Shown here piece after piece: positions 21,083-33,300 of a stretch of 64,000 bases of DNA. This DNA is from Fimbriosthenelais zetlandica. Its lineage: Eukaryota. The DNA lies in contig OZ365110.1 in the NCBI GenBank assembly GCA_977030845.1, positions 41,974,001-42,038,000 on the forward strand. The letters are read 5' to 3'. The translations under genes and the position numbers were made by a program. The notes under the pieces are model-generated. The model worked only from the letters and a program-made list of their open reading frames with translations, did not search any database and was not told the DNA's origin. How positions within the stretch are numbered: the stretch's first letter is position 1; the number at the start of each line of letters is the position of its first letter.

Positions 21083-21303
21083 CTATACATTGTCCGTGTC
21101 TCGATAGCTTCCCTCTGTTGCAACGAAAAAGTCCTCAAAGAATGCACTAAGGAATTCGAAGGTAGGCCTCTTCTCTGGTACCCTCTGCCAGGTTTGTAGT
21201 TTGATTTCATACAAGCTGTCTGGACACTCTACACCTGGGCCCGTAGGTTTTGGCATCCTGTAACCTCTTTCTACTTGGTCCAAACATGTTTTATTATCCA
21301 TAC
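21083..21303 (-). CDS. Src: Src alternative last exon 11B (distal): GMDNKTCL...RPTF...[14 protein letters not shown]
   Basis: CTACTTTCAG|GT ATG phase-1 acceptor; GYRMP, ECP, W......RPTF and tail Tyr; TAG stop at 21085-21083. I found no other Src exons between 21304 and 32967. Confidence 0.88.
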
Positions 21304-24300
21304 CTGAAAGTAGAAAAGTAGACATACTTTGAAATACTCGCTGGTTGCATCACTTTGGCATAAATGACTATTGTGCCTCTTCAAGGCAGTTCATGCATAA
21401 TTATTTACGGTACTATAAATTGTGGTCAGGAGTTCGGAAGAACACCACGATCCGAGGCTGTAGTTAATAATCCTGAATAAATAAAGTGAACAAAAGTACA
21501 TATCATTTCCGACTATGAACTTCACTGGAGGAATAGCCATGCAGGAATGGTTGGAGTATTTACACAGGCTATCTAACATGCAGCTACACATCTATCATTT
21601 TATTAGTGGAGCACAATTTGAAGATGAAGCAGGGTTCTAACAAGTGAGGCAGGAAACAGTTATCCACCCGGCGTGGCCTGCGGAGAAATGGATCCTGTCA
21701 AATGATGGTTGTTTTCCACTGAATCAGCCCAGCATTGCCTTATTATCAAACCACCACATAACCAGACTGGTACGCACCCCTTCCCACAGATGCATTTCTA
21801 TGGAGATGCCTTATGATAATAGACACTATCAGGTTATCTGGCTGGACGAACATCTGGGCAAGTGATTAGGATTTGCTGGTAGTCGTGGCCATAAGCAATT
21901 AAAGTTAAAAGATCCTTCGTCCCAAAGAGATAAGCGTAAAAAATGCGGAGAGATTCTCACTTGAGCAGATGGGTAATGTCAATGATTAAACCGGTGGAAA
22001 GTAAGCCTGTGATGGGCAGAGTGGGATGTGAGGCTACTTCAATATGACAGAGTTAATTAAAGGCTCGTCAATAGCCATCCACTCTATGTCTGAAAGCATC
22101 CAGCTGAGATTGATGTTGATTTTTTTTAAATAGGGATAAATGTATTCCTTGACTAAGCAAAGTATGATGGTCATTGTTAAACGTGTTTTAATGTTTTAAA
22201 TAATTTCGCTGCTTAAATCCGTTTCAGATAATTTGATAAATGTGGAAATAAATGTTCAATATACTTGTGATAAGGGCGGCATGAGAATACACAAAATGCT
22301 GTAACGGTATAAATGAAATGTCCTTCAATAAAAATAAAAATGACAATGAAACATCCAGTAAAATGATAAAACGTGATTCTGTTGCACTGGAATTCCATCT
22401 CAGATTAAAATGACTGAAAAAACTGACCCACACTCAGATTCGAGACACCATTGTCGCTTCTAGAAATCTTCAACACTTTTCAACGCAGGTTTTCATCAAA
22501 AGTAATTGGCTTTGATTATTAATATTTGTTTGGGATTAGAGATATCCTTCCAATTCATAAAGATTGTGTGCGGGAGGAGATCTCTTGATATTGGCAGGTC
22601 TAATCCATGACCTGATTTGCTCCAAATTCCATTAGCCAGGCAGACTTCTATGCTGGCTTTTATGTGGACTAGGCTCATACTCAGTGGGGAAGCAGAAGGG
22701 GGAAAAGTTATGGGCATGTCTGGAAGATGTGACAAGATCTGCTGCTTCTTAGAGTAGTGGGAAAATAGCAGAAAAGAATGACAACTCAGGGGAAAATGAA
22801 AATGGCATGAGAACATCAAACTCTAGCAGAGGTTAGAAGTCAAAAGTCCTCTTTCTGAAACACGCATGTAAACTATTAGCTATGAAGAGAAGCCGAAGAA
22901 AATAAGTTTCACATTTAGCTTCTTGGATTAATCTATCCCTTTTCTTAGAATATGCACGAAATTATGCCCCACAGAGTAGAGACTGCAGCTTGGCATTATA
23001 ACTTATTAGGACACTCATGACACATGTCCTATTGGTCGCCCATAAGAAACAGGGTTCAAAGCCCCGACATTTATGCGGATAATGCACATACTCATATATA
23101 AAGGTGCATTTTGACATGACATATTTACTTCATTTGGCGACAGCGACGAGAGTAAACATATTGATGGCAATGTCAGTCTCATCCTGATGATTACAGTTTT
23201 TAAACATTGTCATCGCCCAATGAAAGGTGCGGCGTGGTTACAATGTGGGCACACCTTCTTAATCAGCCCTATTTGATTTCAGACCACCCACACACATTTT
23301 GGTCTAAATCCCCTTGTGTCTTTAATACTAGTGGTGTGAAATCCCTGTATAATGGTTCTAATACTAAAATCTAATTCTGAAATCCCACCCCCCCGGGCGA
23401 TAATACATAGTCTGAATCCTTGGGTGGTTCAGCTCCCTCTGGTCTGAACCCCCTGGCCACCGGGTGGCGCACACATATTAGACTGGTGCATAACCTGCAT
23501 GACTAGCAGAGTTCCCAAGATTCTTTCGGATTACAGCTCTGGAGGAATTAGCAAGGCAAGCCCAATGCACATATATATGTCATAAGAGATGTAAGGGATT
23601 ACCCTCTTAACCATCCTACAGGGTAAAACCTAAGTGCAAGCAGAAGTAAGAGGTGGGAGTGCACTTAGGAGATTCCTGGTAATAGGGCCTGATGATCAAC
23701 TGCTAGCAAGTTGTCTATCCATTAGATGTACATCAGTCAACATGTATATGAATAATCCCACTTTGGCAAATCCTCCATGGAATACAAAGCTTGTCATTGC
23801 TTGATTCCATCCTTCAATCAGCAACTAAGTCTGGAGAGTGTTCTAAGCTTCACTTGCTCAACAGATTAAACTGACTCAAAGGATATTGGAACTTTAGATT
23901 AGATCCTTGGTAAACAAGTGGAATGGATGAAGTGGAATCAGAGGAACCACTATTCATAATGTTAAATGGTAAGGGGCACCAAGTAGAACCATGATATTTA
24001 TCTATGGGAAACGGTCCTATTTATTCCATCAAAAGCTCAGCAATTGCTTAAAATAAATATACAATTATGTGTCCAGCTCGGTAAGGCTGGCTTCCCTTTC
24101 TTTTTTCGTGCGCTTCCTTCAGTGTGAGCCATTACAGAGCAAGAGGAAAACCAGTAAATTCAATTGCTTCAATTCCCACTTTTCAATGCATCATTCTCTG
24201 AGATGTCATATCAATTGGCAAGGAGGTAGTACCATTAGGAAACCCGAGAGTGGGAGCAGAAGTCGCCTCAGATTTATTGTTAGTGCCTGAAGGTCTACCC

Positions 24301-30300: not shown

Positions 30301-33300
30301 TGGCCCGGAAGGCAAAGATTTAGTGTAAAGTAATGGCAATGACAGGCCTTATTAGACACTCTTAGTACGAACAGACTCCCTGAGCAATTTCTACTGACTC
30401 CTCCGGTTCATCAGGTCAAGGAAAAAGCTCTGTGAGTATAGGACCATAGATGTGACACCAGTAGATGTCACTGACAAGACAGGCCTTCCCACAAAGGAGT
30501 CTGAGACAGACAGTTGTGACAGCTCTCACCTCCAGCCCTCTTCATGCCCTGAAGTCATCACTATGGCAACTTGTCCTGACATCTTGGCCTGGAGGACATG
30601 CATCTCAGCTGGTAAATCGGTGTTGTCTGAGCCAGCCTGCGTCTCAGCGAGAGTCAATGCATACTGGAGGTCTTTCACTGCTGGATAACAAAAGGTAGGA
30701 CGACTGGCCCAAAGACATGGCCATCATGTAAATGACGCCTTTTTTATGCACCCATGACAGTGGTCAGATACATGATATATGGCCTTAAATAAGGGCCGTG
30801 CTGGTTTTCAGATGAGGGCTTTCACATGGAAAGTACTGGCCATTTCCACACCAAGTGACAAGCAAAGCTAAGCTAAGCACAAATCAAAAGCTTCAGCATC
30901 AGACATTACTTCCAACTTTAGCCCCACTATGACTCGAGTGGTCCATCCTTCAGCAAAGTGCAGCCTACACAGTACTATAAGCACTTCCGTCAATTGCCAT
31001 CAAGATTTTGACGGAAATTGGAAGAAATATATTGAGTTGAAGGTTATGCGTATGCTTTTCAAATGAATGACATAGAAATGGTCATCAAAATCTCAGAATC
31101 GGGTAAATTATTCATAGATTTTATTTTCACTTTACAACTGTGTGCGAGAAGTGCGTTCTCTCTTTATATACATCTATGTCCTGTTACAGTTAATATGTAA
31201 ATATAATTCTATAGAAAATATATAAATGTATAAATTGATTTTCATTGCCCATAGAACAGACTTGTATGCAGGGACCTCTAAATATAGGTACTAAAACTAG
31301 ATGGCTTATTACAAGTGACCTCTCAACTGTGAACCTTTCAATTCTTATGAACATCTAATTTTGGACACGGTGTCCACAGTCTTTCTCTTTAACTTGATGT
31401 ATGTACATTTAGGTCTGACCTGCAAGGTAAGCCTTTTCTTCAGAAAAAAAAACAGCGATTATGATTATGTTAAAAGGTAAACAAAAAATTCTGAATGAAA
31501 AAGTGATTCTAAAATGTTTAAAAGGAAATCTTAATAATATGAATTAATGTGTTTTATAAGCAGGATTGATCTGATAAATCTCAGTTAAATTAGAGTCAAA
31601 ACTAAAATTTAATAAAAGAAATAATAGATATAAATGTTATCTATCTGCAGGTGTATTTTCAAACTTGCAGATTGTAACTGATGATCAGGCAAATCTACAA
31701 TTTTAGAGACAATCACGATTCTAAAAAAGCCTGAAAACAAATTAGAAAATATATAATATATATCCTGCCTGTGCTCTATACCCATCCAACCGACTTAATA
31801 CACACAAGCATCTATCGAAATTCTAAAAGCTTTGGGAAATTTCTGACAAGGAAGAAACACTACAATATATTACACGAAGGTGTGAGAAAAATCTAATCTG
31901 TCAAGTGCAGCTCTGGTCAGGATCCAATCATACCAATTATGCCTTTTATAATCATTCATGTGGTGCAAAATGCGCATCATTTTCCTCAAGCTTAAACACT
32001 CAGCAAAACACATTCAATAACTCAAATAGATAACTAAGATTTCATTTTATATGTACTTAGTGGTGTAAATAACTAAGTTATCAATAATGAAAAGTGCTCA
32101 GCTGGATTAACCCTGGCAGTAATATCTCACACTCCCTTTCTGTAGGTTATATGGATAATGCTATAAGTGCTCTTCTAAGTGGGAATAGTTTACAAAACGA
32201 TATAGAGAGGACAAACAAACATCAATTTCCTATATCTTTTCATAATCTAGGCTAGAAGTCTTATTTTTGGATATTTTAATTTTCGATAGCTCATCTTAAA
32301 GCTAAGTATCATACTTAATAGCAAAAATAGTCACAGCTGCATGCAGGTAACACAGGTGATTTGTACATGGTATCCAAGCATACGTCAATACAGGGTTACT
32401 CCAGGAAACCTCTGTAGAACCTTAGACCAAATGTATTAGCATTTCTTTATATATATAAAACAACAGCTCTGTGAAGCCATACACTCCTGTTAGAAGGCAA
32501 TAATCATGAGTAACTCATTTCTGGATCCTCTGGTGTAATTTCCTAAGAACATCTCGAATATTATTCACAATATGAGTACATATCCCCACAACACGTCGCG
32601 TGCTCAGGTGTTAAATTTGATTTTGTTTCCATAGCGTCCATTCAGCTCTTTCCATTGGTTCAATGAAGGTAAAGGGCATTGTCCTATTATTATTTGTTCC
32701 TTCCCAAGGTCCCATAATTTCAAACAAAAGCGGACCAATCAAGATCCTGATCTATTTCTTGTTGCCCCATTTCTCTTCCATTTTAATTTTTGGACGGTAT
32801 TACACCCACAATAAAGCAGTGCCAGCCCGCCATTCAACACAAAACATATCCACAATTGGCGGTATAGATACACCTCTTTGTTCCACCCTTCTTCATTTCG
32901 ATAATAACATAACAGATGAATATGGATGATTTTTATGGATGAGCCCCTCCTAAGGAAGCAGCCCTTCTCAGAATCGCTCCCGGTAGCTAGGCTCTGTGGA
33001 TACGAAGTAGTCATCGAAGTAGCTATATAGGAAAGCAAAGGTTGGTCGTGAGTCGGGGTTACGGTCCCACGTCTTGAGCATGACATCGTACAGCGTGTCC
33101 GGGCACTCGAAGTTGTCCCTAACAGGACGGGGCATCCGGAAGCCTTGCTCGAGCCTTTGGAGCACCTCATTCCCAGTCATACCTGTATAGGTGAGAAAAT
33201 AATGGGCGCCTACAGTACATGATATACTGGTCTAGTAATGCCAAGACCTGTTGCACCATGTGTGAGTGGATTGAGGCGGTGGAGGGAGGAGAGCAGGGCA

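Follow-up and report, generated by a model that had tools for sequence, protein, structure and literature searches.

Two tandem homologous last exons in a Src-family kinase gene of Fimbriosthenelais zetlandica are probably alternative ends derived from an old exon duplication

Src kinases are held off by Csk, which phosphorylates one tyrosine in their tail and recognises a stretch of the C-lobe; residues 504-525 of c-Src are needed for this recognition (PMC3492796). Can a single gene of this family provide two versions of this regulatory segment? The question is raised by a stretch of 64,000 nucleotides from Fimbriosthenelais zetlandica (GenBank assembly GCA_977030845.1, contig OZ365110.1, positions 41,974,001 to 42,038,000), the whole of which is called the window here. 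This 64-kb window harbours one complete Src-family kinase gene on the minus strand. Behind the sole copy of its exon 10 lie two homologous last exons, a proximal one (11A) and a distal one (11B). The original prediction, made from the letters of this DNA, held that a choice between a proximal poly(A) site and distal splicing yields two kinases from the gene. Our analysis agrees with the core of this proposal. 11A and 11B are probably alternative last exons of one Src-family kinase gene and go back to an old exon duplication, with the splicing itself inferred from sequence.

All features described in the window are on the minus strand. Exon 11A (32968..33182) comprises 70 codons and a TGA stop codon (32970-32968), exon 11B (21083..21303) comprises 72 codons and a TAG stop codon (21085-21083), and both encode the same part of the kinase, the end of the C-lobe (c-Src residues 466-520) and the tail. 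As predicted, both are intact and begin at phase 1 acceptors with a polypyrimidine stretch before AG/GT ATG (the slash denotes the splice junction), namely cacctatacag/GT ATG at 33182 for 11A and tactttcag/GT ATG at 21303 for 11B. The predicted gapless homology with 34 identical residues was recovered as well, over 68 aligned residues (34/68; reciprocal tblastn E = 8e-23, far beyond chance). Codon identity between the two exons amounts to 59% at position 1, 69% at position 2 and 31% at position 3; thus synonymous sites are random between 11A and 11B while the protein has been maintained. Each exon spans positions 208-256 of the 258 positions of Pfam PF07714, plus the tail tyrosine. In alignments with solved structures of c-Src, both exons match end to end, starting immediately behind PYPG and reaching the tail tyrosine (E = 2e-16 for 11A and 8e-20 for 11B). 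The 11A tail (TEPSY-RERF) and the 11B tail both align to TEPQY of c-Src (Tyr527), and the Csk-type site expected in either exon thus appears to be there. Two departures from c-Src which had been noticed in both exons, a 4-residue insert between RMPxP and ECP (after P484) and a Thr at the position of c-Src Cys498, are borne out by the same structures.

Both last exons fit one donor. Exon 10 (...IPYPG; 45457..45588; PF07714 positions 163-207) ends at 45457 with ...CCATATCCAG/gtgagt (CCAG/gtgagt) in phase 1, one base of a Gly codon being left over. This is the only phase 1 donor, and both last-exon acceptors match its phase. Comparison of every kinase exon with all six frames of the window by tblastn revealed no second copy of any other exon of the kinase gene, which upholds the earlier observation of a single KWTAPE exon and of no other kinase, SH2 or SH3 exon between the two copies. 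11A and 11B therefore form a tandem of homologous copies that share strand and acceptor phase and lie 3' of one common donor. Each of them terminates the reading frame with a stop codon. Mutually exclusive internal exons of the FYN type were considered and excluded, since both copies end in stops and kinase coding sequence 3' of 11B was found neither in the window nor in the following 10 kb of two related loci (L001, L009) or 6.8 kb of a third (L012).

Do 11A and 11B belong to the same gene? The best of the competing explanations assigns 11B, as last exon, to another Src-type paralogue that has its exons 1-10 above position 64000 and holds the gene described here inside its last intron. The DNA beyond the window, which reaches 2.4 kb past the ATG exon, is unseen, and A and B copies form old, distinct clades which could derive from two genes. 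Still, we regard such a nested arrangement as improbable, because the order exon 10, 11A, 11B on one strand recurs in three species (here and on contigs ctg39074 and ctg94141l) with very different intron sizes. The ENA contig ctg39074 (4.19 Mb) was followed over 56 contiguous kb across loci L016, L002, L015 and L001. Its layout on one strand is exon 10, 13.1 kb, 11A, 7.3 kb, a third copy termed 11C, 20.1 kb and 11B, and no further kinase exons were detected in this 56-kb stretch. Contig ctg94141l (L009), the exon 10 protein of which is 98% identical to that of the window, is compact (exon 10, 4.1 kb, 11A, 5.5 kb, 11B) and has no second set of kinase exons within 20 kb. The more distant genome GCA_013332715.1 (L010) shows exons 8, 9 and 10 and then, within 1.5 kb, two B-type last exons 350 bp apart. 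Since these B-type exons stand directly behind exons 8-10, the B type is the end of the same gene there. On marine-biofilm metagenome scaffolds (L003, L004), two A-type copies are separated by 750 bp, which leaves no space for the exons of another gene between them. Spacings of just 350-750 bp speak against nesting, and a last intron of more than 43 kb holding a whole paralogue on the same strand would have to be kept in all these species.

Alternative last exons of one gene thus remain the preferred reading, and the relatives show how old such an arrangement may be. In L003, L009 and L010, each of the six copies inspected has a phase 1 acceptor of AG/G followed by ATG. In a tree of the last-exon peptides, the A copies form one clade and the B copies another, each with support 99/92, and doubles from the same species fall within their own clade. 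The duplication is therefore older than these species. A search of related genomes and a gene tree had been proposed as a check on the two-exon idea; orthologues of both exons and the two clades are what they returned. Exon 11C (L002:17533-17736; 1,729,178-1,728,975 of the ctg39074 record) is intact and lies between the orthologues of 11A and 11B. It has the acceptor cacccacag/GT in phase 1, CAG in place of ATG, 67 codons and the 4-residue insert, reads RMAHP and not RMPxP, ends in the tail EYEVTNYTIAY without TEPxY, and has a very long branch in the tree. The window contains no counterpart of 11C. Judged from these genomes, exon 10 with its array of putative alternative last exons is old and conserved, and its copy number is still changing.

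Two further observations concern last-exon copies elsewhere. At L023:2797-3141 and L024:194-352 (JAAUXT, JAAUYG) a B-type exon is present only from VPDALYD on, preceded by an acceptor-like ...FLQ; an additional intron may divide it, or it may be a truncated copy, and JAAUYG holds at least three B-type pieces. Proteins with several matches in the representative search were mostly fused models of tandem whole kinases and were set aside; only P0002 doubles the last exon alone. This protein (UniParc UPI00078A0E0F, 465 aa) is a Src-type model from another animal, without the insert, which carries two last-exon homologues in series and skips catalytic exons. It suggests an independent last-exon duplication elsewhere combined with a predictor artefact.

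Are both copies in use? One of them could be a relic, an unused leftover of a partial duplication that is open by chance, and the long branch of 11C and its lack of the usual tail motif indicate that some copies may indeed be decaying. For 11A and 11B we consider this very unlikely in view of their orthologues. The peptides of both exons were searched against a large protein collection, in which the matched proteins measured 40-126 aa. Orthologues of 11B have identities of 90% (P0176), 86% (P0151), 85% (P0177), 71-73% (P0152-P0154 and P0180) and 63-64% (P0155/P0156); by locus the values are 90% (L012), 86% (L001), 85% (P0177) and 72% (L009). All 11B orthologue proteins are 72-73 residues long, so that they stop at the same place. 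Orthologues of 11A show 76% (P0174) and 65% (P0175), or 76% (L002) and 71% (L009) by locus. Between orthologues, the proportion of nonsynonymous differences (pN) is 0.04-0.08 and that of synonymous differences (pS) 0.77-0.92 for 11B; for 11A the corresponding values are 0.14-0.20 and 0.67-0.76. By this measure both last exons are under strong purifying selection with saturated synonymous sites, and 11B is the more constrained one. Saturated pS together with low pN argues that 11A and 11B have both been translated and selected for a very long time. A relic would hardly have orthologues of both copies in at least three species with an amino-acid change of only 4-20% at saturated pS, nor would it retain acceptor, phase and stop position; 11B, the more constrained copy, has a conserved end of its 3' untranslated region (3'UTR) in addition.

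Two arguments of the original prediction did not survive this comparison. The TW motif had been taken as an inherited mark shared by the two exons. Orthologues of 11A read KCW (L009, L003), and orthologues of 11B read TCW, SCW, QCW or SSW. Since orthologues of both exons carry CW or SW, Cys was probably ancestral in both clades and Thr has arisen separately in each exon. The 4-residue insert had been read as a sign of duplication within this gene. It is widespread in the last exons of invertebrate Src-type kinases (for example in P0009, P0012, P0014, P0016, P0022, P0041, P0044, P0062 and P0081) and marks the subfamily. The proposed choice between proximal poly(A) site and distal splicing within one gene remains probable without these two arguments; it has gained the conserved exon order, the selection on both exons, the conserved poly(A) block of 11B described below and the B-type exons found behind exon 10.

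What kind of kinase do these ends complete? The parts of the gene follow each other in the order of the Src family: an N-terminal Met-Gly acylation signal (MGNCLSS), SH3, SH2 and the tyrosine kinase domain, with the KWTAPE motif also present. It is a Src-family kinase gene of the Src64B/SRK type; ten of its coding exons are constitutive, and two would serve as alternative last exons. Constitutive exons 1-9 (56257..61617) were placed by motif scan, frame segments and Pfam, and the positions of their splice sites are approximate. Exon 1 holds the ATG at 61617. It is followed by a unique-region exon at about 61.3 kb (motif scan and frame segments), two SH3 exons at about 59.6 and 59.0 kb (Pfam SH3_1), two SH2 exons at about 58.3 and 58.0 kb (Pfam SH2) and the first three kinase exons at about 57.5, 57.1 and 56.4 kb (Pfam PK_Tyr_Ser-Thr positions 18-164). 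Exon 8 accounts for positions 18-111 of PF07714, exon 9 for 106-164 and exon 10 for 163-207. Exons 1-9 lie within 5.4 kb, and the last three introns measure 10.7, 12.3 and 24.2 kb, the last figure applying when 11A is skipped; it is only in the alternative 3' region that the introns are long.

The region of exons 1-9 is collinear with a full-length mRNA, L020, and the same holds for all exons of the window gene. L020 is a polyadenylated contig of 1,982 nt from a JGI metatranscriptome, a distant orthologue with an open reading frame (ORF) of 585 codons and an MGNAC start. In it an exon reading ...AAFERKFS...IPYPG is joined to a B-like end. L020 is RNA evidence, from a distant species only, for a junction between an exon 10 of this kind and a B-like end.

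Where would the two transcripts end? After the 11B stop codon, a long 3'UTR (15176..20653) is marked by blocks conserved with L012 and by a terminal AATAAA block found in three species. The terminal AATAAA lies at 15197-15192. Over the 76 nt at 15176-15250 that include it, identity with L001 reaches 91%, as against 75% for the coding exon, and conservation stops about 20 nt past the signal. Within the 5,885 nt following the 11B stop, AATAAA or ATTAAA occurs 3 times, as opposed to 7.9 expected, and is absent from the first 4 kb. Conservation ending about 20 nt past AATAAA is the usual mark of a true cleavage site, which argues for a real 11B cleavage site here and hence for a 3'UTR of 5.9 kb. 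For 11A, the candidate proximal poly(A) signal is an ATTAAA at 32782..32787, 181 nt past the stop codon.

The claim that only 11B bears a module behind its stop codon holds and is strengthened by in-frame conservation in three species. An open extension of 142 codons (20654..21082) continues in frame past the TAG, and two other species (L001:10217-10480 and L012:2025-2345) preserve it in the same frame. It starts with LVGPAGMPASR, ends with SKSGAPHGPRMY and a stop codon (...HGPRMY) and matches no Pfam domain. Its pN is 0.05 with a pS of 0.34-0.57, and the stop context GTA-TAG-CTAG is identical in the three species. The B exons of L009 and L010 are followed by double stops and lack the extension. 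The conserved extension argues that ribosomes traverse 11B in this frame, and these data support decoding of the 11B TAG by readthrough or possibly through adenosine-to-inosine (A-to-I) editing of UAG.

Upstream of 11B, a non-coding block within the intron (21650..22088, i.e. 350-790 nt before the acceptor) is conserved as well. It is 76.7% identical to L012 over 442 nt, contains many perfect runs of 15-40 nt, and these are rich in TAAT/ATTA. No ORF was found in it, and Rfam, applied over 14-34 kb, gave no match. This candidate regulatory element may regulate the use of 11B. The presence of this block of 440 nt could also suggest an internal promoter near it (22088-21650), driving a separate short transcript in which 11B is translated from its first ATG into a fragment of 72 residues (about 214 with the extension), a reading in keeping with the ATG at the start of the exon and with the conservation of the tail after the TAG by itself. 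This is very unlikely, as the Met corresponds to residue 466, which is conserved throughout the Src kinases, and is no special start, the AG/G phase 1 acceptor two bases before it is retained at every copy examined, and the conserved W499, RPTF, LY and ECP are buried in the C-lobe and make sense only when packed on the rest of the kinase domain. The small probability left over belongs to arrangements that we have not thought of.

Several points weigh against alternative last exons of one gene. The peptide tree has 72 columns; it does not settle the relation of A and B and does not demonstrate that they are each other's nearest relatives. A test of A and B as a single clade gave p = 0.016 against it; as A-like and B-like rows were left outside the tested group, no conclusion is drawn from this value. 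Because the window covers just 2.4 kb ahead of the start codon, it leaves room, by inspection, for a second gene upstream. The 3' flank of 11A cannot be aligned between species, and its sole signal is the non-conserved ATTAAA. A metagenome scan returned genomic copies and the distant L020 and no spliced transcript of the close lineage. Protein searches likewise found no annotated or transcript-derived full-length protein of the close lineage with an A or B end, and the most closely related full-length sequence, P0094, is an isolated transcript contig of 2 kb that lacks genomic context. P0183, a transcript protein of 337 aa, was considered as a relative and rejected; it is a chelicerate Src64B, and its last exon matched arthropod proteins, none of them close.

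If 11A and 11B are alternative last exons, what does their exchange alter in the protein? The swapped part corresponds to c-Src 466-533 including the tail tyrosine, and the counterpart of c-Src 504-525 lies entirely inside it. Kept in both clades are the buried L472, G478, RMP, P484, C487, P488, L491, W499, RPTF 506-509, L512, D518, F520, E524 and Y527. Fixed differences between A and B (c-Src numbering) are found at positions 468 (G/N), 474 (R/Q), 517 (D/E), 519 (Y/F) and 525 (P/G). At position 510 all ten B copies (10/10) have Glu, as does c-Src, and the A copies have Ala, Ser or His (Ala in 11A). These clade-specific differences cluster at the exon start (c-Src 467-476) and in the stretch recognised by Csk together with the tail (510, 517, 519, 525). 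As residues 504-525 lie wholly in the swapped exon and clade-specific residues occur there, a different Csk docking and autoinhibition of the two forms is a plausible hypothesis.

Compared with the last exon of c-Src (466-533), 11A and 11B keep W499, RPTF 506-509, D518, F520, E524 and the tail Tyr. They depart from it in the insert that follows P484 and in the absence of Cys483, Cys496 and Cys498. The two exons differ from each other at residue 510 (Ala in 11A, Glu in 11B) and two residues ahead of the tail Tyr (Pro in 11A, Gly in 11B). Tandem duplication of exons is known from the Src family in FYN, whose exons 7A and 7B (FynB/FynT) are mutually exclusive internal exons (PMC9741552). FYN and the gene in the window have tandem homologous exons in common, which give, or here would give, isoforms that are identical outside one swapped, still-folding segment with an effect on autoinhibition. 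In FYN, however, these exons are internal, encode the SH2-kinase linker and the beginning of the N-lobe and have common flanking exons, and the choice is made by splicing only. In the window gene it is the end of the C-lobe and the regulatory tail that would be swapped; there is no common downstream exon and each copy has its own stop and probably its own 3'UTR, so that the choice would have to go together with that of the polyadenylation site. Other signalling genes, such as those for protein kinase C beta I/II and KRAS 4A/4B, also possess homologous alternative C-terminal exons. There, too, two homologous C-terminal coding exons swap the C-terminal regulatory segment of a signalling enzyme, but the genes and folds are unrelated, and the window gene would swap three helices of the catalytic domain, with two to three copies depending on the species. 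The srk1 and srk4 cDNAs of the sponge Spongilla lacustris are reported to be two Src-related cDNAs from one gene; if so, an invertebrate Src-family gene would there give two kinases with a common 5' part and alternative 3' parts. The literature searched contained no account of a Src kinase with duplicated last exons. The principle is known, both from homologous alternative C-terminal exons elsewhere and from the internal exons of FYN, and a last-exon array tuning the off-switch of a Src kinase is not known to have been described for the family.

How might the choice between the two ends be made? With exon 10 spliced to 11A, the transcript would be cleaved at the proximal poly(A) site and carry a short 3'UTR. 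Skipping of 11A would join exon 10 to 11B, 24 kb away, and the transcript would end at the conserved AATAAA 5.9 kb further. As is usual for alternative last exons, splicing to 11A with proximal cleavage would compete with the skipping of 11A. The two proteins would be identical up to PYPG and differ at half of the last 70 residues, and the 11B form would be lengthened by about 142 residues if the TAG is decoded. We tentatively extend this to the plastic last-exon array seen across species (A and B; A, C and B; two B; two A). It is possible, if rather doubtful at present, that one Src kinase is thereby issued in different cells with different Csk-recognition surfaces and inhibitory tails, the B form being further marked by its very long conserved 3'UTR and its recoded extension.

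For annotation, the locus is a warning that gene predictors may drop one of the copies or fuse both, as in P0002. For the biology of Src kinases, its meaning lies in the segment concerned. The Csk-recognition surface and the tail, and nothing else, are apparently swapped within one gene, and both versions have persisted over a very long divergence. Production of both isoforms would provide a natural comparison of how much of Src control sits in this segment. If our reading is true, the choice of the 3' end, a short 3'UTR versus one of 5.9 kb, would be tied to a change in the catalytic domain, and the off-switch of a Src kinase would be subject to modular tuning.

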